Below, one piece after another: positions 1 to 56,454 of a DNA stretch of 64,000 nt; within the stretch, counting starts at the first letter, position 1, and every line of letters starts with the position of its first letter. A model generated the notes under the pieces. It was not told the origin of the DNA, did not search any database, and saw only the letters and a program-made list of their open reading frames with translations. Origin of the DNA: Selaginella moellendorffii (taxonomy: Eukaryota > Plantae > Lycopodiophyta); the NCBI RefSeq assembly GCF_000143415.4, contig NW_003314385.1, positions 215,296-279,295 on the forward strand. Reading direction: 5' to 3'. The position numbers were made by a program, and so were the translations under genes.

Positions 1-984
1 CAGCCCGGAAACGCTGTGGTTCATCAGTCGAGAGCTCTCATGGAAGCCCGTGCTCACAACTATTCCTTGGCGCGCTCCAACTTTCGGCTGGCTGTCAAGG
101 CGGACTCACACGATGCAAAGTGCTGGCAGGCTTGGGCCTTGTTCGAGGCAAGCCAACGCAAGTTTCGAGAGATGAGGCAGCTCTTCTACCGTGCTTATCT
201 CGTCAACACCAACGATCTATACACTCTCCAGGTAGAACCAAAGTTTTTAGTTCCAAGGTTCCTTCTTATTTTCTTTCCATACAAAACAGGCATGGGCTCA
301 TCAAGAAGCGCTCATTGGCACCACCAAGTCCAAGAACCGGGCTAGAAAATTATACCAACGATGTGTGGAGATCTCTCCAGAGAATATTTATTCCTGGCAG
401 GTTTGTCACTAGATTTCTTTTCACTGGCTTCACGAGACTTTTGTTTTGGCCAGTCGTGGGGTCTTTTGGAGGAGAGATCGGGGAACCACCAAGGTGCTCG
501 AGTGCTCTACGAACAGGGGCTTCGGATCGATCCTTCAAGCGTTCCCTGTCTCCAAGTAAGTTAGTCGTGGCGATTTGTTTTTCCTCTTTTGCTCGAAAAC
601 CATGTCGTCACCATATCACAGGCATACGCTCGCCTGGAAAAAAGCCAGGGGAACATTGAGACTTCGAGAAAACTATTGCAAGCTGCTCGGAAAATTGATC
701 CTCACAATGCTCCATCGCTCATGGTCAGTAAAATCTATAGACTATTCTCCATCTCTCTGTTTTAACAAAGAAAACTGGCACTGACCCAGGAATCCGGCCT
801 GATCGAGCTTGAGCTCGGGAACAACGACGTCGCTCGCGAATTTTTCAAGCGCGCGCGGAAGATCGACAGGGAAAAGAGCCGTATCAAGAAGCGGATGTTC
901 ATCTCGCGCAAGACATCGAGGTTGCAAAGCCCGGGAACCACCGTCAAATTCGAAAATCTAAATCCGAGGCAAGCAACGGTCTAG
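1..984 (+). CDS. 3' part of a HAT/TPR-repeat protein (HCF107/Mbb1-like family); exons <1-231, 290-400, 454-555, 622-723, 790-984
   Basis: The spliced frame gives HAT-like repeats (WQAWALFE, LQAWAHQE, WQSWGLLEERSGN..GARVLYEQGLRIDP, LQAYARLEKSQGN). All introns are GT-AG and the TAG is at 982-984. Confidence 0.8.
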
Positions 985-1089
985 ATGGGCGTGCCGAGAC
1001 GGACGGTTCACAGTAAAAGAGCCTAGGATATACCCATAATTTGAATTGCTCTTAAGCCCTAAAGGGCGCGGAGAGGAGAGAGCTCGGCT

Positions 1090-2541
1090 ATGGCGCCGAC
1101 GGCCGACTACGATCTGTGGAAGAAGCACACGCCAGATCTCTACGATGTGATCATCACTCATGCTCTTGATTGGCCGGTGACGTCGGCGCAGTGGCTCCCT
1201 GATCATCAGAGGATCTTGCTTGGAATCAAGGCGCTGGATGATCCCGAAGATTGTCTGGAGAATTGCGTCCTCATCGTCAAGCTCGCTGTCCCAGCCGATC
1301 TTGACGCCGAGATCCCTGAGAACTGGGTAAGGCCCCCCTCCTCCTTCCTTTCATGTCTTTCTTGCGTTTCTTGATCTTTGTCCGATGAGGCTGAAATTCG
1401 ATGTGGAATGCCCCATCCTAGGTCCAGATGACTCAATGGATCAAGCACGAAGGCCAGGTCAATCGAGCTCGCTACATGCCGCAATGCCCAACCATCGTCG
1501 CCGCCAAGGGCGAGACGTCGCGAGTTTGCATCTTCGACACCACGAAGCACGAGAATTCCGGCGGCCTGCCGTCGCAAGTGATCGCCCAGACCCAGCCGGA
1601 GATGCTACTCGAGGGGCATACCAAAGGTGGCCATGGTTTATCCTGGAATCCCTTCGGATGTGGCATCCTCGCGAGTGGATCACGCGATGGTCTCGTTTGC
1701 GTGTGGGATGTGGGCGCCGCTGGATCATCGTCTCGTCCCATTATCACTTACCCGGTACGTAGACCTCATGAGGCAAAGATATTTGATGCTTGCTCATAGT
1801 TTTTTCCTCGTTTTTTTCTTAGCAAAACACTCCAGTGGGAGACCTTACCTGGACGTCAAAACACGAGAACGTCTTTAGCACCGGGGATGAAGCAGGCTGG
1901 ATGCGGACATGGGACTTGCGAGATCCTCTCAATCCAGTGGTTGCGGCGCGTGCTCACTTAGACCCATTGGAGTCACTGGCCTATCATCCTTATGACGAAT
2001 TCTGTCTCGCAACTGGTTCGTGCGATAACACTGCCCGGATCTTCGACATACGCGCGCTCTCCCAGCCTATGCACACGTTCGTCGGTCACAGGTAAGTGAT
2101 CTCTTTGGTCGAATAATGTTCCTCTCTTCGATCAATCCATTTTGATCTAGGGATACGGTTGTACGCGTCGACTGGAGTCCCAAATATCCGGGTGTGTTGG
2201 TTACGTCGTCAGAAGATCACAGGGTCATGCTTTGGAACGTGCAAAGGTGGCCTTTGTGAAAAACAGTAATCTATAGAGTAACTTTTTTGCTCGTCCTCGG
2301 TGAATCCAGGATTGGGGACGAACAGAGCGCCGAGGATGCCGAAGACGGACCACCCGAGCTCGTGTTCATCCACGGTGGACACTGGGACATAGTCCACGAC
2401 TTCTCCTGGGACGCCACCGCCAATCTCATCACCAGCGTCGGAGAAGATCAAACTGTTCAGATCTGGAGGACGGCAAAACACATCAAGCGCACTATGAAGG
2501 GCTCTTCGCCATCCAGGGTGGAGATCCCTTCCTCTCCATGA
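1090..2541 (+). CDS. MSI1/RBBP4 (CAF-1 p48)-like WD40 histone-binding protein, divergent but intact; exons 1090-1326, 1422-1754, 1823-2091, 2151-2246, 2310-2541
   Basis: Motifs [45 protein letters not shown] and [24 protein letters not shown]. Exons sum to 1167 nt in frame. Confidence 0.9.
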
Positions 2542-2864
2542 TCAGAGAACGAGCAACAGTCTCCTCGAGCTCTAAAACAGCGTCAACGTTGCAAGAGCAC
2601 GAAGGCACTGCTGCTGTCACTCGCTCTACTCCCAGCCTACCAGCTCAAGTATCATCCGATCTGTCACAAGGACGGCGGCCGTGTTTCCTTTTGTCATGGC
2701 AATCTCTTGAGCGGATCATGCCATGGTCTTGTGTGGTGAGATCTCGTCTCATTAACCATGTATAGCGCAATTTCTCGTCTTGATAAACTCTTATTTCTTC
2801 AAGCTCAAGTTGGAGAAGTTACTTAGTAGTAGAAAATCCGTATGAAGATTCTCTACCCGCGAAA

Positions 2865-4060
2865 ATTTAAATCCAATACAGGCAACGGTCTAGATGGGCT
2901 TCACAGTAAAGGACCTTAGGATATGCCTTTATTTGAAATCCTACGGAGTCACCAGAGGATCTTGCTTGGATCCAAGGCGCTGGATGATCCCCACGATTGT
3001 CTCGAGAATTGTGTCCTCGTCGTCAAGCTCGCTGTCCCAGCCGATCTTGACGCCGAGATCCATGAGAACTGGGTAAGGCCGCTTCTCTTGACCTCTAGAT
3101 CTTGTGAGTGTGTGGAATAGGTCCAGATGACTCAATGGATCAAGCATGAAGAAGGTCAGGTCAATCGAGCTCGCTACATGCCACAAACCCCTTCCATCGT
3201 CGCCACCAAGGGCGAAACGTCACGAGTTTGCATCTTCGACACCACTAAGCCCGAGAATTCCGGCGGCCTGCCGTCGCAAGTGATCTCCCAGGCACAACCG
3301 GAGATGCTACTCGAGGGGCACACCAAAGGCGACCGTGGTCTCCCTTCCGATGTGGCAACCTTGTGAGTGGATCACGCGATGGCCTCGTATGCGTGTGGGA
3401 TGTGAGCGCTGGTAGATCTCGTTTTACACGGTACGTCTGGAAAAGATTTTATCCTTGCTCACAGTTCTTCTTCGATGGAAGCAGCACAAAACTCCAGTGC
3501 GAGAAGCTACCTGGGCGGCGAAACACGAGAACATCTTTAGTACCGCGGACGAAGCAGGCTGGATGCGTACGTGGGACTTACGAGATCCTTTCAATCCAGT
3601 GGTTGCGGTGCGTGCTCACCTAGACCCATTGGAGTCACTGGCCTATCATCCTTATGATGAATTTTGTCTTGCAACTAGTTCGTGCGATAACACCGCGGTT
3701 GTACGCGTCGACTGGAGTCCCAACCATCCAAGTGTCTTGGTTACGTCGGCAGAAGATCACAGGCTCATGCTTTGGGACGTGAAAAGGTGGTCTTGTGAAA
3801 AAGTATAGTTTAACATTAACTTGGCCTCCGTGAATGCAGGATTGGAGAAGAACAGAGCGCCGAGGATGCTGAAGACGGACCACCTGAGCTCCTTTTCATC
3901 CACGGTGGACACTGGGACATAGTCCACGACTTCTCCTGGGACGCCACCACCAATCTCATCACCAGTGTCGGAGAAGACCACACTGTCCAGATCTGGAGGA
4001 TGGCAGAACATATTGAGTGCACTATCAGGGACTCCTCCATTGCTTCCCCTTCGGGATGTA
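2865..4060 (+). pseudogene. Tandem MSI1-like pseudogene (copy 2)
   Basis: Close DNA similarity to 960-2540, but the 5' coding start is deleted, there are frameshifts/deletions near 3330-3420, and the exon 3/4 junction is deleted near 3695. Confidence 0.85.
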
Positions 4061-4619
4061 ATCATGGAGAGCAGGGGTCTCCATGATCACAAACGAGCAA
4101 TAGAGATGTTACTATGCCTCTCCTTCAATCATCGCCATCATGTCCGAACTGTTGCAAAGACACTAGCAAGCACGAGGATCAGCACAAAGTATACTCGGAT
4201 CCAGTGTTGTTCAAGGGACACAAGGATTGCATTTATCATGGCAATCTCTTGAGTGGATCATGCCATGGTCTCTCGTGTGTTTGTGGGATGTGAGTAGTCG
4301 TCCCATATTAACATGCCCACAGTACGTCGCAATTGTATAGCGCAATTTCTCGTCTTGTAAACCAGTTTAGTTCGAAGGTCCAAACATGAGCACGTTCCAA
4401 GATCTACAAATTTACCATAAACTGCCTGAAAATTTTAAACTTCACAGCCTCACACCCCAAAGATCTCCCTTGAGTTCTCAGAGAAGAGGTGTCATTGTTC
4501 CGACTCTCGGGACATCATTCTCTTGCAAATTGTTTCACTTTTAGCTCACAAACTCTAAGCCATGACACTTATTCCTTGAATTCGTTGATGAATTCCACCT
4601 TTACCGAATAAATTCCATG

Positions 4620-50726: not shown

Positions 50727-52472
50727 TCTCTCGAGCTTGCTCATCATCGAATCTAGCACAGGAAGCTCCTTGACAAGCTCTTGCCATTCAGGCATTCCCT
50801 GTAGCAGCACCCAAATCACTTTTGCTCTCTAGCCAACTAGATTAAGAAGATTTGCTTACCCGACCCGATTTGCGGATTCTCCCATCGAGCCGGAGCACAA
50901 TGAAAACCTCTTCGCCACCGGTTACTCCTTCCGACTCTTGCTGCTCAAAGATCCACCTGATTGTCGTTTCCACACTCTAAACGCTCAAACAAGGTAGAAA
51001 CAAGATACTCACCTCTCCCATTCTGCTTGAGAAACCACCTCCGCTACAAATCGCTTCTCACTCTCGAGCACTGCCTTCAGTGCCGCGTCCTGCGCTCGTT
51101 TTTGAAAATCATCCTGAATCACGAGAGAAAAGGGAAATTTAGGAACCACGGATTGGATAAGCTTACGCTGCCGGAGCCAGCTGCTGGAGCTTTTACGGAG
51201 CGTCCAAATCCTTTCTTCTTAGGCGTCTCGTCCTTTTTCCTCCACTCGACCGGAATCAAGAGCACGCCTCGTTGGAGGAGATCTTTGCGGTATCTCTCCG
51301 CCTTCTCCAAAGCTCCCTTGATCGACTCTTTGGTACCGGCCAATATCACCTTTCGCTCCAAGAGAACATATAAGCAAGCTTGGTTTGATATTGGAAAAAA
51401 AATTAAAATTCTTACCGGTCGTGTGATCCCTCGAAGTTGCACCACCTCCACGATGCGTCCAGTCCCGAGCCGGACAGGAAGCCTTGACAAAGTCTCGTTT
51501 CTTGTGATTTGAGACATTTGCGTCTCTTCTTTCTTGCTGTCCCAGATAAACAAGGACACAAAAGCCACTATACCTGTGAAAAAGCGCAACCTTGATTAGG
51601 TGAAAGCACACTCTCGTCACATTTACCTGCGAGGTCTATGGCCAAATTCTGTGCGGTCTCCGTGACGCTTGGAGCGTCCTCTCCCCCCTGCAGTGCCCGA
51701 ATGAGCCTCGGGACCGTGATGAAAGTCGCGATCCCAGCGGCAATCGTGAATGCGACGTAGAAAAACTTGCGAACGCCACGAAACGGTGCCTGGACTTCGC
51801 TGATGAGCTTTAAGTCTCTTCGGAAGCTGCTTCCAGTGTCTTCGCCACCTTTCCTAGCCTGTCCAGTGCACGGGAAAGCTCATCACTTCGGGCCCAGCAA
51901 AGATTGAGAGAGAGAGAGATTGGCTCAACCTCGTCCTGGAGAGCCTTGAATTCTGGAGACGCTCGGAAGGGAGCAAGGTCCGGATCATTGAGGATGACAT
52001 GAAACTTGACGTTGTAATCGCGCAGCGCTGTTTGCAATGCCTGTGCTGCTTTCGCGGGTTCTTCCCTGGAAACAAATGGTCACGAAAGGAGAGAAGAAAC
52101 GAAAGAGTCGAAGAAAGCACGAAACCTTGAAGCATGGCAGCAAGCTTTGTTGTAGTACGCGGCCTGCGCCTCATCGAAGTTTGGATTCATGGCCAGGGCG
52201 GTATCAAACTGATGCAATGCGTCCTTCACCTGCCTAGTGAGAACAAACCAACACGTATGGAATCATCCACATCCATGGAGCTTCGCTAAAGTACCCTTCC
52301 TTTGGAGAAGAGTGACAAGCCCAGATTGACGGCGTCGGTTGCTGTTTTCACCTGTGATTCGCTTCCATCCTTGGCAGCGCGCACCCTGATCGCGATCTTG
52401 GCGCGCCCAAATGCGAGGCGACGAGGGGCGGCACCACACCTGAGCGTCACGCACCCGGAAAAACACAAGACA

Positions 52473-52477
<5 letters not shown>
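50724..52477 (-). CDS. LPA1: LOW PSII ACCUMULATION 1 (TPR + DUF3493 thylakoid PSII assembly factor), multi-exon
   Basis: VNLGLSLFSKGRVKDAL, AYYNKACCH, ILNDPDLAPFRASPEFK.LQDEAR.GGED.G..FRRDLKLISEVQAPFRGVRKFFY, ITRNETLSRLPVRL; C-terminus GMPEWQELVKELP..LER*. Confidence 0.92.

Positions 52478-52550
<73 letters not shown>
52478..52550. repeat. (CT)n(CA)n compound microsatellite directly upstream of the LPA1 ATG
   Basis: Direct reading; reads as GA repeats on the LPA1 sense strand. Confidence 0.95.
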
Positions 52551-52690
52551 CAAAAGAGAAACCCTCTTATCTTTCTTTTGTGACCTCTACGAGGATCTTA
52601 GCCCGCGAGACATCGATCGTTCTTTACGTTTAGATAGAACCGCACTTTCTTTACCCTTTGCTCGAATCCATTTCCAGAGATAGCGGAGTA

Positions 52691-53746
52691 ATGGCGTCTT
52701 CTCTCGTTGCTACCAGGTCGCTCCTTCTCCCGCATCAATCTTGCTCCTCTACTCGAAGAAATGGCGGCCACATTGTAGTTTGCTCTTGCTCCTCCATGGA
52801 AGACTTCACCAGAAAAGCAGGCAAGCTCGCATTCGCTACAGTGGCGGCCACAGTCCTCCTCGCCGGGGTAAGCTCCTCGCCATAGACCATCTTTCACCTC
52901 CTCCTTCGACACAGCATTTGCCCGGTGTGGGCATTTGTGAGTTCTCTTAGAGACCTTGTGTCCCTTGTCTTGCATTGATAGGCAGCAGATGCCCGGCCGC
53001 GCCCCCGCTTCGGATCCAGCGACGAGGAGATCCGCGAATACCTGGACAAAACCCCCAGCTACGACGATCAAATGATGCGAGCCTATCTGGACGTCAAAGG
53101 TAAGTGGACAGGAACCAAATGCCCGAGCCCCGTCACCAGCGGTGGCACCGACGGTTTCAAGCTGGAACCCGGTGACTACTACGTGACCAACATGTGTTTG
53201 CAGCCAACCTCATACCAAGTCACCCGGAAGGCCGGGATTGGCGAGTTTGACATCTCGACAACGTACGAGACCAAGCTGCTTGCGAGGGTGGACGGGATCG
53301 AGGGCTCCCTGGCCGTGGCTCCAGACGGTGGTGTCAAGTTCGAGGAGAAGAAAGGGCTCAACACGGACACCACCATCGCCAAAGTCATCGCTAGGCTTCC
53401 CGGGAAGCAGGAGCTGGTGCCCTTCATGTTTGGGATCCAAGACCTGGTTGCGTCGGGCAGGCCGGAATCTTTCGGTGGCCAGTTTGTAGTTCCCACAGCG
53501 ACGATCCAACCGAAGAAACTGGACGTGGATGAGATCGAGCCGCTGGAGAGCACCACCACGGAGGGCAGCATTGTGTTCAAGGTGACGAGGAGCAACTTGG
53601 AAGCCAAGGAGCTGGGTGGCGAGTTCGAAACCAGCCAGCTCTCGGGCCTGGATCTACGGTCCAGATCCAACGCGGGCTTCCTCATTGGAAACAAGGAGAA
53701 GAAGAGGGTCAAGGTATCGGGCGTGTGGTATGCAAAGCTCGATTGA
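52691..53746 (+). CDS. Divergent PsbO (OEE1/MSP)-like protein with bipartite thylakoid-lumen transit peptide; exons 52691-52867, 52982-53746
   Basis: YLDVKG...CP, MCLQPTSY, LPG..LVPFMF and KVSGVWYAKLD; same intron position as the PsbO neighbour; ADA cleavage motif; the [14 protein letters not shown]...GYDNAVALP loop is absent. Confidence 0.88.
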
Positions 53747-53896
53747 TTGCTACGAGATAACTCTGATAGAAAGAATGTAAAGAAAAACAGTACCATGGAT
53801 TGGATATCTCAATCAAACAAAGCTAGATATCATATCCTTTGGCTTTGAAAGTGCCAGGTGGCGCGTGCCCATTGGTTTCTCCAGCTTGTGGCGGCA

Positions 53897-53987: not shown

Positions 53988-55061
53988 ATGGCGGCATCGG
54001 TGGTAGCAGCCAAGGCCGGGCCATCGCTCCTCCAGCCCAAGCTCGATGCCTCTGCCGGATCATCCGCCAGCCTCCGCCCGGTGTCGGTGTCCAAGGCATT
54101 TGGATTGCGCAGCAATGGAGGAGGAGCGCGCCTCACTTGCTCCATGGAGGACATTGTCAAGAGGGCCACGGATGTGGGCAAGGTCGCCGTTGCCACTGCC
54201 GCAGCCACATTGCTCGTCGCAGGGGTAAGCAAAAGATCTCCTGAATTGAGAGAATTGGAGCAAGTCTGGTAGTGATTCTCATGAATTTTCCCCTGTTTTG
54301 TGATGCTCTAGACCGCCGCCGCGAATCCAAAGCGCCTCACATACGACGAGGTCCAAGCCCAGACGTATCTCGAGGTGAAAGGCAGCGGCACCGCCAACCA
54401 GTGCCCGATCCTGTCCGGTGGCGACGGAGGATTCAAGTTCAAGCCCGGCAGCTACAGCGTCAAGAAGTTCTGCCTCGAGCCCACGTCCTTCACCGTGAAG
54501 AAGGAGTCGCCATTCAAGGGTGGCGGCGATCAATACGTCGACACCAAGCTCATGACGAGGCTGACATACACGCTGGACGAGATCGAGGCCGACTTGAGCG
54601 TGGACGAGAAGGGAAACCTCAAGCTGGTGGAGAAGGATGGCATCGACTACGCTGCGGTTACCGTCCAGCTCCCCGGAGGCGAGCGAGTTCCATTCCTCTT
54701 CACGATCAAGGAGCTCGTAGCGACTGGCTCCCCGGATGGATTCAGTGGAAGCTTTCTGGTGCCGTCTTACAGGGGCTCCTCGTTTCTAGACCCCAAGGGA
54801 CGCGGTGGATCCACCGGGTATGACAATGCGGTGGCGTTGCCGGCCGGAGGCGCCGGTGACGAGGAGGAGCTCGGCAAGGAGAACCTCAAAGATACGTCGG
54901 GGTCGACCGGGAACATCACCTTGAAGGTGGCCGAGAGCAACACCGCCACTGGAGAGATTGCCGGAGTGTTTGAGAGCATCCAGCCCTCGGACACGGATCT
55001 GGGATCCAAGGCTCCCAAGGAAGTGAAGATCCAAGGTATATGGTACGCGCAACTTGACTAA
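53988..55061 (+). CDS. PSBO: Oxygen-evolving enhancer protein 1 (PsbO); exons 53988-54224, 54312-55061
   Basis: [81 protein letters not shown]. Confidence 0.98.

Positions 55062-55482: not shown

Positions 55483-56454
<972 letters not shown>

Follow-up and report, generated by a model that had tools for sequence, protein, structure and literature searches.

A transcribed and constrained tandem duplicate of psbO in Selaginella moellendorffii with rewritten photosystem II contact loops

PsbO is the extrinsic subunit of photosystem II (PSII) common to all oxygenic phototrophs. In the DNA of Selaginella moellendorffii analysed here (64,000 nucleotides, hereafter the window, within which all positions are numbered), a divergent psbO-like gene lies immediately upstream of a canonical psbO, in tandem. 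The psbO-like gene is on the forward strand and has two exons. Exon 1 (52691-52867, 59 codons) is translated into a stromal transit peptide followed by a thylakoid-transfer segment, which ends in hydrophobic ...LAFATVAATVLLAG. A phase-0 intron of 114 nt with GT..AG borders (52868-52981) separates it from exon 2 (52982-53746, 254 codons and a stop), which encodes the last four signal residues (AADA) and then a mature protein of about 250 amino acids. The product of this open frame, 313 amino acids long, is identical to the RefSeq protein XP_024521334.1 (P0207), named 'oxygen-evolving enhancer protein 1, chloroplastic-like', and the allele on the other haplotype is XP_024522430.1 (P0001). In RefSeq, the gene is present only as automated '-like' models, without an accession from the original annotation, and neither of the two accessions was found in the full-text literature searched.

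The canonical psbO (53988-55061, forward strand) begins 241 bp downstream of the psbO-like gene and has the same two-exon structure (exons 53988-54224 and 54312-55061, intron 54225-54311). Its product matches SELMODRAFT_272235 / XP_024521333.1. The first exons of the two genes are collinear, with 31 of 59 residues identical, and in both genes the intron sits 12 nt (4 codons) upstream of the predicted A-x-A cleavage site. An earlier note on this DNA, made from the sequence alone, had described a tandem PsbO duplicate with the same intron position. The gene models bear this out, with the qualification that an intron at this position is conserved in all land-plant psbO genes (PMC4459440). The shared intron implies that the psbO-like copy is a DNA-level duplicate and not a retrocopy, and does not give the date of the duplication.

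Three runs, X1, X5 and X10, each belonging to a different study, contain a single contig of spliced mRNA of the psbO-like gene. In these contigs, sequence starting at 52563 (X1 and X5) or 52636 (X10) and reaching 52866 was joined to sequence from 52981 onward, skipping the intron, and ran on to 53874 (X1), 53832 (X5) or 53765 (X10), with 0-1 mismatches per piece relative to the window. They define a 5′ untranslated region (UTR) at 52563-52690, which is a minimum extent because the contigs end at a microsatellite, and a 3′ UTR at 53747-53874, both on the forward strand. The RNA label of these runs is a guess, and their spliced form, transcriptome-sized contig sets and very high depth of canonical psbO fit RNA. 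Contig depth, a poor measure of expression, was 18-64 for the psbO-like gene versus 73-4225 for canonical psbO. The psbO-like transcript is thus present and probably minor relative to the canonical one. Absence of expression had been named in the earlier note as a finding that would refute its proposal; the spliced contigs in three runs show otherwise.

Both haplotype scaffolds carry the two-gene pair with the same exon structure, and they are 95-96% identical over the region. In both, the psbO-like frame is open for 313 codons and the GT..AG borders of the intron are kept, so the copy is intact, without stop or frameshift, as first described. Between the haplotypes, the psbO-like gene showed 9 synonymous and 4 non-synonymous differences (synonymous divergence dS 0.040, non-synonymous divergence dN 0.0056), giving a dN/dS of 0.14, lower than the neutral expectation (binomial p = 0.0008, 13 differences) and far from the value near 1 that had been proposed as the mark of a decaying copy. 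For canonical psbO, the corresponding counts were 13 and 1, with a dN/dS of 0.024. The codon tallies pool aligned segments of both exons; the intron is in phase 0, so the counts are unaffected. The exons of the psbO-like gene differed by 1.2-2.3% between haplotypes, whereas its intron, UTR and intergenic spacer differed by 3.5-4.7%. When canonical exon 2 was evolved neutrally in simulation down to the observed identity, it remained free of stops in only 2 of 2000 cases. All indels of the psbO-like gene, at least five, are in frame. Splicing, the low dN/dS and the open frame together make a decaying pseudogene unlikely.

Synonymous divergence between the paralogues has reached saturation (proportion of differing sites pS 0.66, dS at least 1.5), and of 54 fourfold sites 13 have the same third base. 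Between the haplotypes, dS is 0.04-0.06. The duplication is thus an old one. A maximum-likelihood tree of 43 PsbOs placed the divergent protein inside the embryophytes and, in its best version, as sister to canonical Selaginella PsbO. Its end branch was 3.34 changes per site long, compared with 0.31 for canonical Selaginella PsbO and a median of 0.17. Exclusion of the divergent protein from the embryophyte PsbO clade was marginally rejected (approximately unbiased, AU, test, p = 0.042). The placement fits a tandem duplication in the lycophytes or in the Selaginella lineage, although with a branch of this length it falls short of proof.

The mature parts of the divergent and canonical proteins are 37% identical (BLASTP, E 1e-43). 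Against the Pfam MSP profile (PF01716), the divergent copy scored 96.9 bits in two stretches (cut-off 25), the best of which covered residues 34-172, and the canonical copy scored 328.6 bits. Both proteins were aligned to a profile of 77 canonical PsbOs from land plants, algae and other representatives, and MAFFT alignments were made in addition. We defined as family-conserved the 119 columns that are at least 85% identical in these 77 sequences. The canonical Selaginella protein keeps 117 of them and the divergent copy 55; among the other 64, 18 are deleted and 46 substituted. Conserved glycine, proline, cysteine and hydrophobic residues were kept more often (39/60) than polar or charged ones (16/40; Fisher p = 0.023), as would fit a protein whose fold is retained and whose surface has been rewritten. 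Its mature form is predicted to be less acidic (isoelectric point 5.6, net charge -2) than the canonical one (isoelectric point 4.8, net charge -9).

Two segments are the most heavily remodelled. The first is the head-domain loop, which in canonical PsbO reads SYRG...FLDPKGRG...GYDxAxALP (Asp158-Lys188 in Thermosynechococcus numbering). In the psbO-like protein it is replaced at 53495-53563 (forward strand) by 23 residues in place of the canonical 48, a shortening by 25. SYRG, the arginine of DPKGR and a further conserved 10-residue stretch are missing, and the aspartate of DPKGR has become glutamine; 18 conserved columns are deleted, and both conserved arginines are gone. The second is the contact loop at 53642-53686 (forward strand), corresponding to Asp222-Ala228, which contains SDTDLG in plants. 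Here SGLDL, with only one of the carboxylates left, stands in place of SDTDL, and ten inserted residues, RSRSNAGFLI, come after it. In published work, the loops Asp158-Lys188 and Asp222-Ala228 contact D1 and D2 (PMC7318136), and the PsbO head domain inserts near the oxygen-evolving centre (PMC12661325). At the Cl-1 channel gate, the backbone amides of Leu157 and Asp158 are hydrogen-bonded to D1-Arg334 and D1-Asn335, and mutations of Asp158 impair both activity and binding of PsbO (PMC12661325). The two segments changed most in the Selaginella paralogue are therefore the two loops that contact D1 and D2, in line with the earlier suggestion that regions touching the PSII core had been lost.

Other changes are smaller. 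The mature protein begins with an N-terminal extension (RPRPRF...LDKTP; 52994-53056, forward strand) of about 16 net extra residues, with a helix predicted at residues 14-23. The extension precedes a retained SYDD...AYLDVKG, which resembles canonical LTYDE...TYLEVKG; the N-terminus of PsbO has been implicated in specific binding to PSII (PMC12661325). LTYT is deleted at the junction TKLLAR/VDGIEG (53287-53288, forward strand). A four-residue insert, TDTT, interrupts a conserved 10-residue segment (53363-53374, forward strand) and is not among the changes listed in the earlier note. The N-terminal extension, the loss of LTYT after KLLAR, the replacement of the DPKGR region and the altered SDTDLG with its following insertion had all been listed in the earlier note, and all were reproduced in the profile alignment. 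Its description of the losses as targeted held in part: both contact loops are remodelled, but 46 further conserved residues are substituted across the barrel.

Several features of PsbO are retained. Cys47 and Cys72 (exon-2 numbering; segment between them 53120-53197, forward strand) occupy invariant columns of the 78-sequence alignment and would form the conserved disulfide, the bond itself being predicted. Also present are the hydrophobic segment for thylakoid transfer, its A-x-A site and the C-terminal GVWYA. The translation and the alignments thus agree with the earlier account of a bipartite transit peptide, both cysteines and the C-terminus. The arrangement of the bipartite transit peptide, including the intron position, is that of PsbO, and its splice joint was seen in the transcript contigs; import is predicted from it. 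Between the paralogues, the transit-peptide exon is conserved at least as well as the mature part (53% versus 44% of aligned positions identical). Transit peptides are not usually so well conserved, and selection on targeting therefore seems to persist.

An AlphaFold2 (AF2) model built from the 78-sequence alignment had a mean predicted local distance difference test score (pLDDT) of 82.7 and a predicted template modelling score (pTM) of 0.76. The barrel strands were mostly above 90, and confidence was low exactly at the rewritten head loop (residues 171-190; pLDDT 63-65 over the replaced segment) and in the insert region (residues 221-240; pLDDT 64-65 over the second contact loop). In a Foldseek search of the PDB with this model, the best 43 matches were all PsbO chains (TM 0.45-0.85), including 5G38, the engineered barrel-only PsbO of Thermosynechococcus (TMt 0.79). 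The predicted structure thus retains the eight-stranded beta-barrel of PsbO, and here the model and the Foldseek matches agree with the barrel strands noticed at first reading. In the ESM Atlas, a search by features returned MSP clusters only. Structure matches there to generic outer-membrane-type barrels (TM ~0.5) were not read as kinship.

Relatives of the psbO-like protein were sought in several collections. A word-index protein search with exon 2 returned its own cluster only; it missed canonical PsbO itself and is uninformative on distant relatives. An exhaustive phmmer search of 1.84 billion cluster representatives gave 87 matches, 86 of them non-self, and only the self cluster fell below 1e-30. 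None of these representatives shares the derived traits of the psbO-like protein, which was found only as the two S. moellendorffii alleles. Some phmmer matches had no additional residues where they aligned to the C-terminal half, and they were considered as possible loop-less relatives; all were canonical PsbOs or truncated or frameshifted models. A scan of metagenome contigs with the psbO-like protein found no relative. In a control search, canonical Selaginella PsbO retrieved thousands of plant PsbOs, the best non-self ones being 75-78% identical (Diphasiastrum and mosses), and none of the sequences from this search grouped with Selaginella in the tree. The best identity being 75-78%, other species of Selaginella are evidently missing from the collection. 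Orthologues, for which the earlier note had proposed a search, were thus not found outside S. moellendorffii, in a collection without further members of Selaginella, the genus in which they would be expected.

One further run, X18, comes from another organism and shares a study with a Selaginella run. It contained low-depth pieces of canonical psbO only (54777-55021) and was uninformative as a source of orthologues. Those of its contigs that are identical to Selaginella psbO are probably carry-over, and those that are about 87% identical and continue into unlike sequence are probably that organism's own psbO.

On the other side of the psbO-like gene, in head-to-head orientation, lies a homologue of LPA1/REP27, a factor of PSII assembly and repair, with TPR and DUF3493 domains (50700-52477, reverse strand; 3′ limit approximate, first ATG at 52477). 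The DUF3493 domain ('Low psii accumulation1 / Rep27') was detected at 51628-51822 on the reverse strand (E 3.2e-24), and the other haplotype has, in the same place, a gene for 422 amino acids with TPR_16 and DUF3493. The 5′ ends of the LPA1-like and psbO-like genes are less than about 90-210 bp apart. Most of the short spacer is taken up by a microsatellite at 52478-52549, (CT)26 followed by (CA)10. Together with psbO, these two genes make three PSII-related genes within 4.4 kb, in both haplotypes. The clustering is compatible with shared regulation, of which it is only a hint.

The gene cluster, with 50-60% G+C, adjoins a block of 25-35% G+C (44000-51000) that is present in both haplotypes. 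In this block there is an open reading frame for 177 amino acids (49652-50185, forward strand), the product of which has a mannose-binding lectin domain of the bulb type (B_lectin, E 1.5e-11). A stretch around 50230-50726 is directly and locally duplicated. Downstream of psbO is a polyubiquitin gene (55501-56454, forward strand) with four ubiquitin units in the window. Its counterpart on the other haplotype (L001, 8847-9536) has three units and 229 amino acids, a possible difference in unit number between haplotypes. Further canonical psbO models, EFJ04421.1 (partial) and XP_002994513.2, were found on a separate 11-kb scaffold of S. moellendorffii; they may represent a third copy or an unplaced haplotype fragment.

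In our interpretation, psbO was duplicated in tandem long ago in the Selaginella lineage, and the psbO-like copy has been kept as a working gene whose product is no longer a canonical manganese-stabilising protein. We give this reading a probability of about 0.6. PsbO's normal job is probably no longer done by this copy. Its protein would be imported into the thylakoid lumen and keep the barrel and the disulfide, having lost or remodelled the D1/D2 loops near the Mn4CaO5 cluster and the Cl-1 proton channel. By analogy with an engineered loop-less PsbO, PsbO-beta, it is expected to fold as a soluble barrel, and it would be unable to cap the Mn4CaO5 cluster in the canonical way.

Several points weigh against this interpretation. 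The support for it comes from DNA, transcripts and a predicted structure. Contig depth, although a poor measure, hints at a transcript level well below that of the canonical gene. The selection estimate comes from only 13 differences between two haplotypes. The sister relationship to canonical Selaginella PsbO is weakly supported (53/14), and so long a branch could be misplaced by artefact. The other species sampled (mosses, liverworts, ferns, seed plants and one clubmoss, with no other Selaginella) yielded no orthologue, and Diphasiastrum, the only named lycophyte outside Selaginella, appeared with canonical PsbO alone. The AF2 barrel rests on an alignment composed almost wholly of canonical PsbOs, and the single-sequence AF2 model reached a pLDDT of 34.

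The copy could instead be a specialised PsbO isoform, still an extrinsic subunit of PSII, that would bind by way of its N-terminal motif and barrel and alter the properties of the oxygen-evolving centre in certain tissues, kinds of plastid or light regimes. In favour of this, the targeting peptide for the lumen is kept, as are the disulfide pair, the predicted barrel and the SYDD...AYLDVKG motif; the N-terminus has the role in PSII binding cited above (PMC12661325), and the gene is expressed alongside the canonical one in the Selaginella runs. The isoforms of angiosperms, however, differ by 2-9% with the PSII-facing surface fully conserved (PMC4459440), while 63% of residues differ here. The loop that bears Asp158 and both conserved arginines around it have been deleted or replaced, and mutations of Asp158 alone are enough to impair binding and activity (PMC12661325). 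We therefore consider an isoform unlikely.

Somewhat less likely again is an expressed relic, a copy without a function of its own that decays slowly, in which the open frame and the low dN/dS reflect chance or weak residual constraint. Such a relic would fit the occurrence in a single species in the collections searched, the loss of over half of the family-conserved residues, the contig depth below that of the canonical gene and the 13 sites on which the selection test is based. It would also have a precedent in Brassicaceae, where a third, divergent psbO is a pseudogene in Arabidopsis (PMC4459440). It would not readily explain why 942 nt have stayed open despite synonymous saturation, which happened in 2 of 2000 neutral simulations, or why at least five indels are all in frame. 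The dN/dS of 0.14 (p = 0.0008), the lower divergence of the exons relative to flanking non-coding DNA, and the preservation of splice sites and targeting peptide in both haplotypes also speak against it. An assembly or annotation artefact, that is, a chimeric or mis-assembled psbO copy, had to be considered because both haplotypes are represented in the S. moellendorffii assembly, along with small additional scaffolds that carry psbO pieces, and the gene is known from automated RefSeq models only. This explanation is already effectively refuted: the same two-gene arrangement and exon structure are found on both haplotype scaffolds at 95-96% identity, and transcript contigs obtained independently in three studies agree with it over their whole length, with 0-1 mismatches per piece.

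If the psbO-like gene is a working duplicate that has left the canonical role, its protein might associate with PSII, or with assembly or repair intermediates of PSII, without engaging the manganese cluster. Alternatively, it might have a lumenal job unrelated to water oxidation. We weakly prefer the association with PSII or its intermediates, because a binding-type motif is retained at the N-terminus together with the barrel, and because the neighbouring gene is of the LPA1 type; a PSII-independent lumenal role appears about as likely. The earlier note had proposed a neofunctionalised PsbO-like protein. The part of this proposal that stood is an intact, transcribed and spliced gene under purifying selection that has lost the loops, and the part that goes beyond the results is the new function, the arrival in the lumen and the existence of a family, together with the suggested roles as a placeholder, a decoy or a subunit of another complex.

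A bolder and doubtful possibility, to which we give less than even odds, is that this is the first natural 'PsbO-like' protein: a barrel in the lumen that lacks the loops near the Mn cluster, is conserved across Selaginella and takes part in assembling or repairing PSII or in some other lumenal complex. For PsbP and PsbQ, large families of neofunctionalised paralogues are known. If the bolder possibility were true, PsbO would gain relatives of a kind so far known only for those two subunits, and the head-to-head pairing with the LPA1/REP27-type gene would reflect co-regulation. As the earlier note had supposed, no 'PsbO-like' family has been described in the full-text literature searched, nor in a 2025 review of the extrinsic subunits. 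The psbO-like protein is a candidate for a new lumenal function; should the gene turn out to be confined to one species and to yield no detectable protein, it would be only a curiosity of lycophyte gene turnover.

Compared with known systems, the closest is canonical PsbO/MSP itself. The psbO-like protein belongs to the same Pfam family and has the same intron position, disulfide pair, bipartite transit peptide and predicted barrel fold. It differs in its 37% identity, the 55 of 119 conserved residues that it keeps, the alteration of both loops, the loss of LTYT and the added N-terminal extension. By descent, profile match and fold it is a member of PsbO/MSP, one that lacks two features defining a functional PsbO. 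A similar evolutionary pattern is seen in the PsbP-like, PsbP-domain and PsbQ-like proteins (PPL, PPD and PQL/PnsL), paralogues of subunits of the oxygen-evolving complex that keep fold and lumen targeting and not the canonical role. These are unrelated in sequence to PsbO, conserved across green plants and have demonstrated functions, whereas the psbO-like protein is known from one species and has only a conjectured function.

Within the PsbO family, the isoform pairs of land plants, such as Arabidopsis PsbO1/PsbO2 and those of Physcomitrium, likewise arose by lineage-specific duplication of psbO with a conserved intron (PMC4459440). The members of such pairs differ by 2-9% with the PSII-facing surface conserved (PMC4459440), whereas the Selaginella pair differs by 63%, with changes on the PSII-facing loops. 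The third psbO of Brassicaceae (At4g37230-type) is, like the Selaginella gene, an extra, unusually divergent and lineage-restricted copy (PMC4459440), and it is the only comparably divergent natural psbO copy found in the literature searched. In A. thaliana, A. lyrata and B. rapa it is reported to be a pseudogene, and in Thellungiella it is expressed (PMC4459440). By this published description, the Selaginella copy, which is intact in both haplotypes, spliced and constrained, is set apart from it.

The nearest structural parallel is a laboratory construct and not a natural gene. In engineered PsbO-beta of T. elongatus (5G38/5G39), residues 1-15 and the loops 55-63, 149-192 and 220-231 were removed, and the protein is soluble and folded (PMC7318136). 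Like the predicted Selaginella protein, it is a PsbO barrel without the loops that contact D1 and D2. The Selaginella protein keeps shortened, rewritten loops and gains an N-terminal extension, whereas PsbO-beta loses the N-terminus. A naturally head-less PsbO that is transcribed and constrained is a natural experiment on what the barrel does, for example in proton handling, docking or assembly, apart from the loops close to the manganese cluster.

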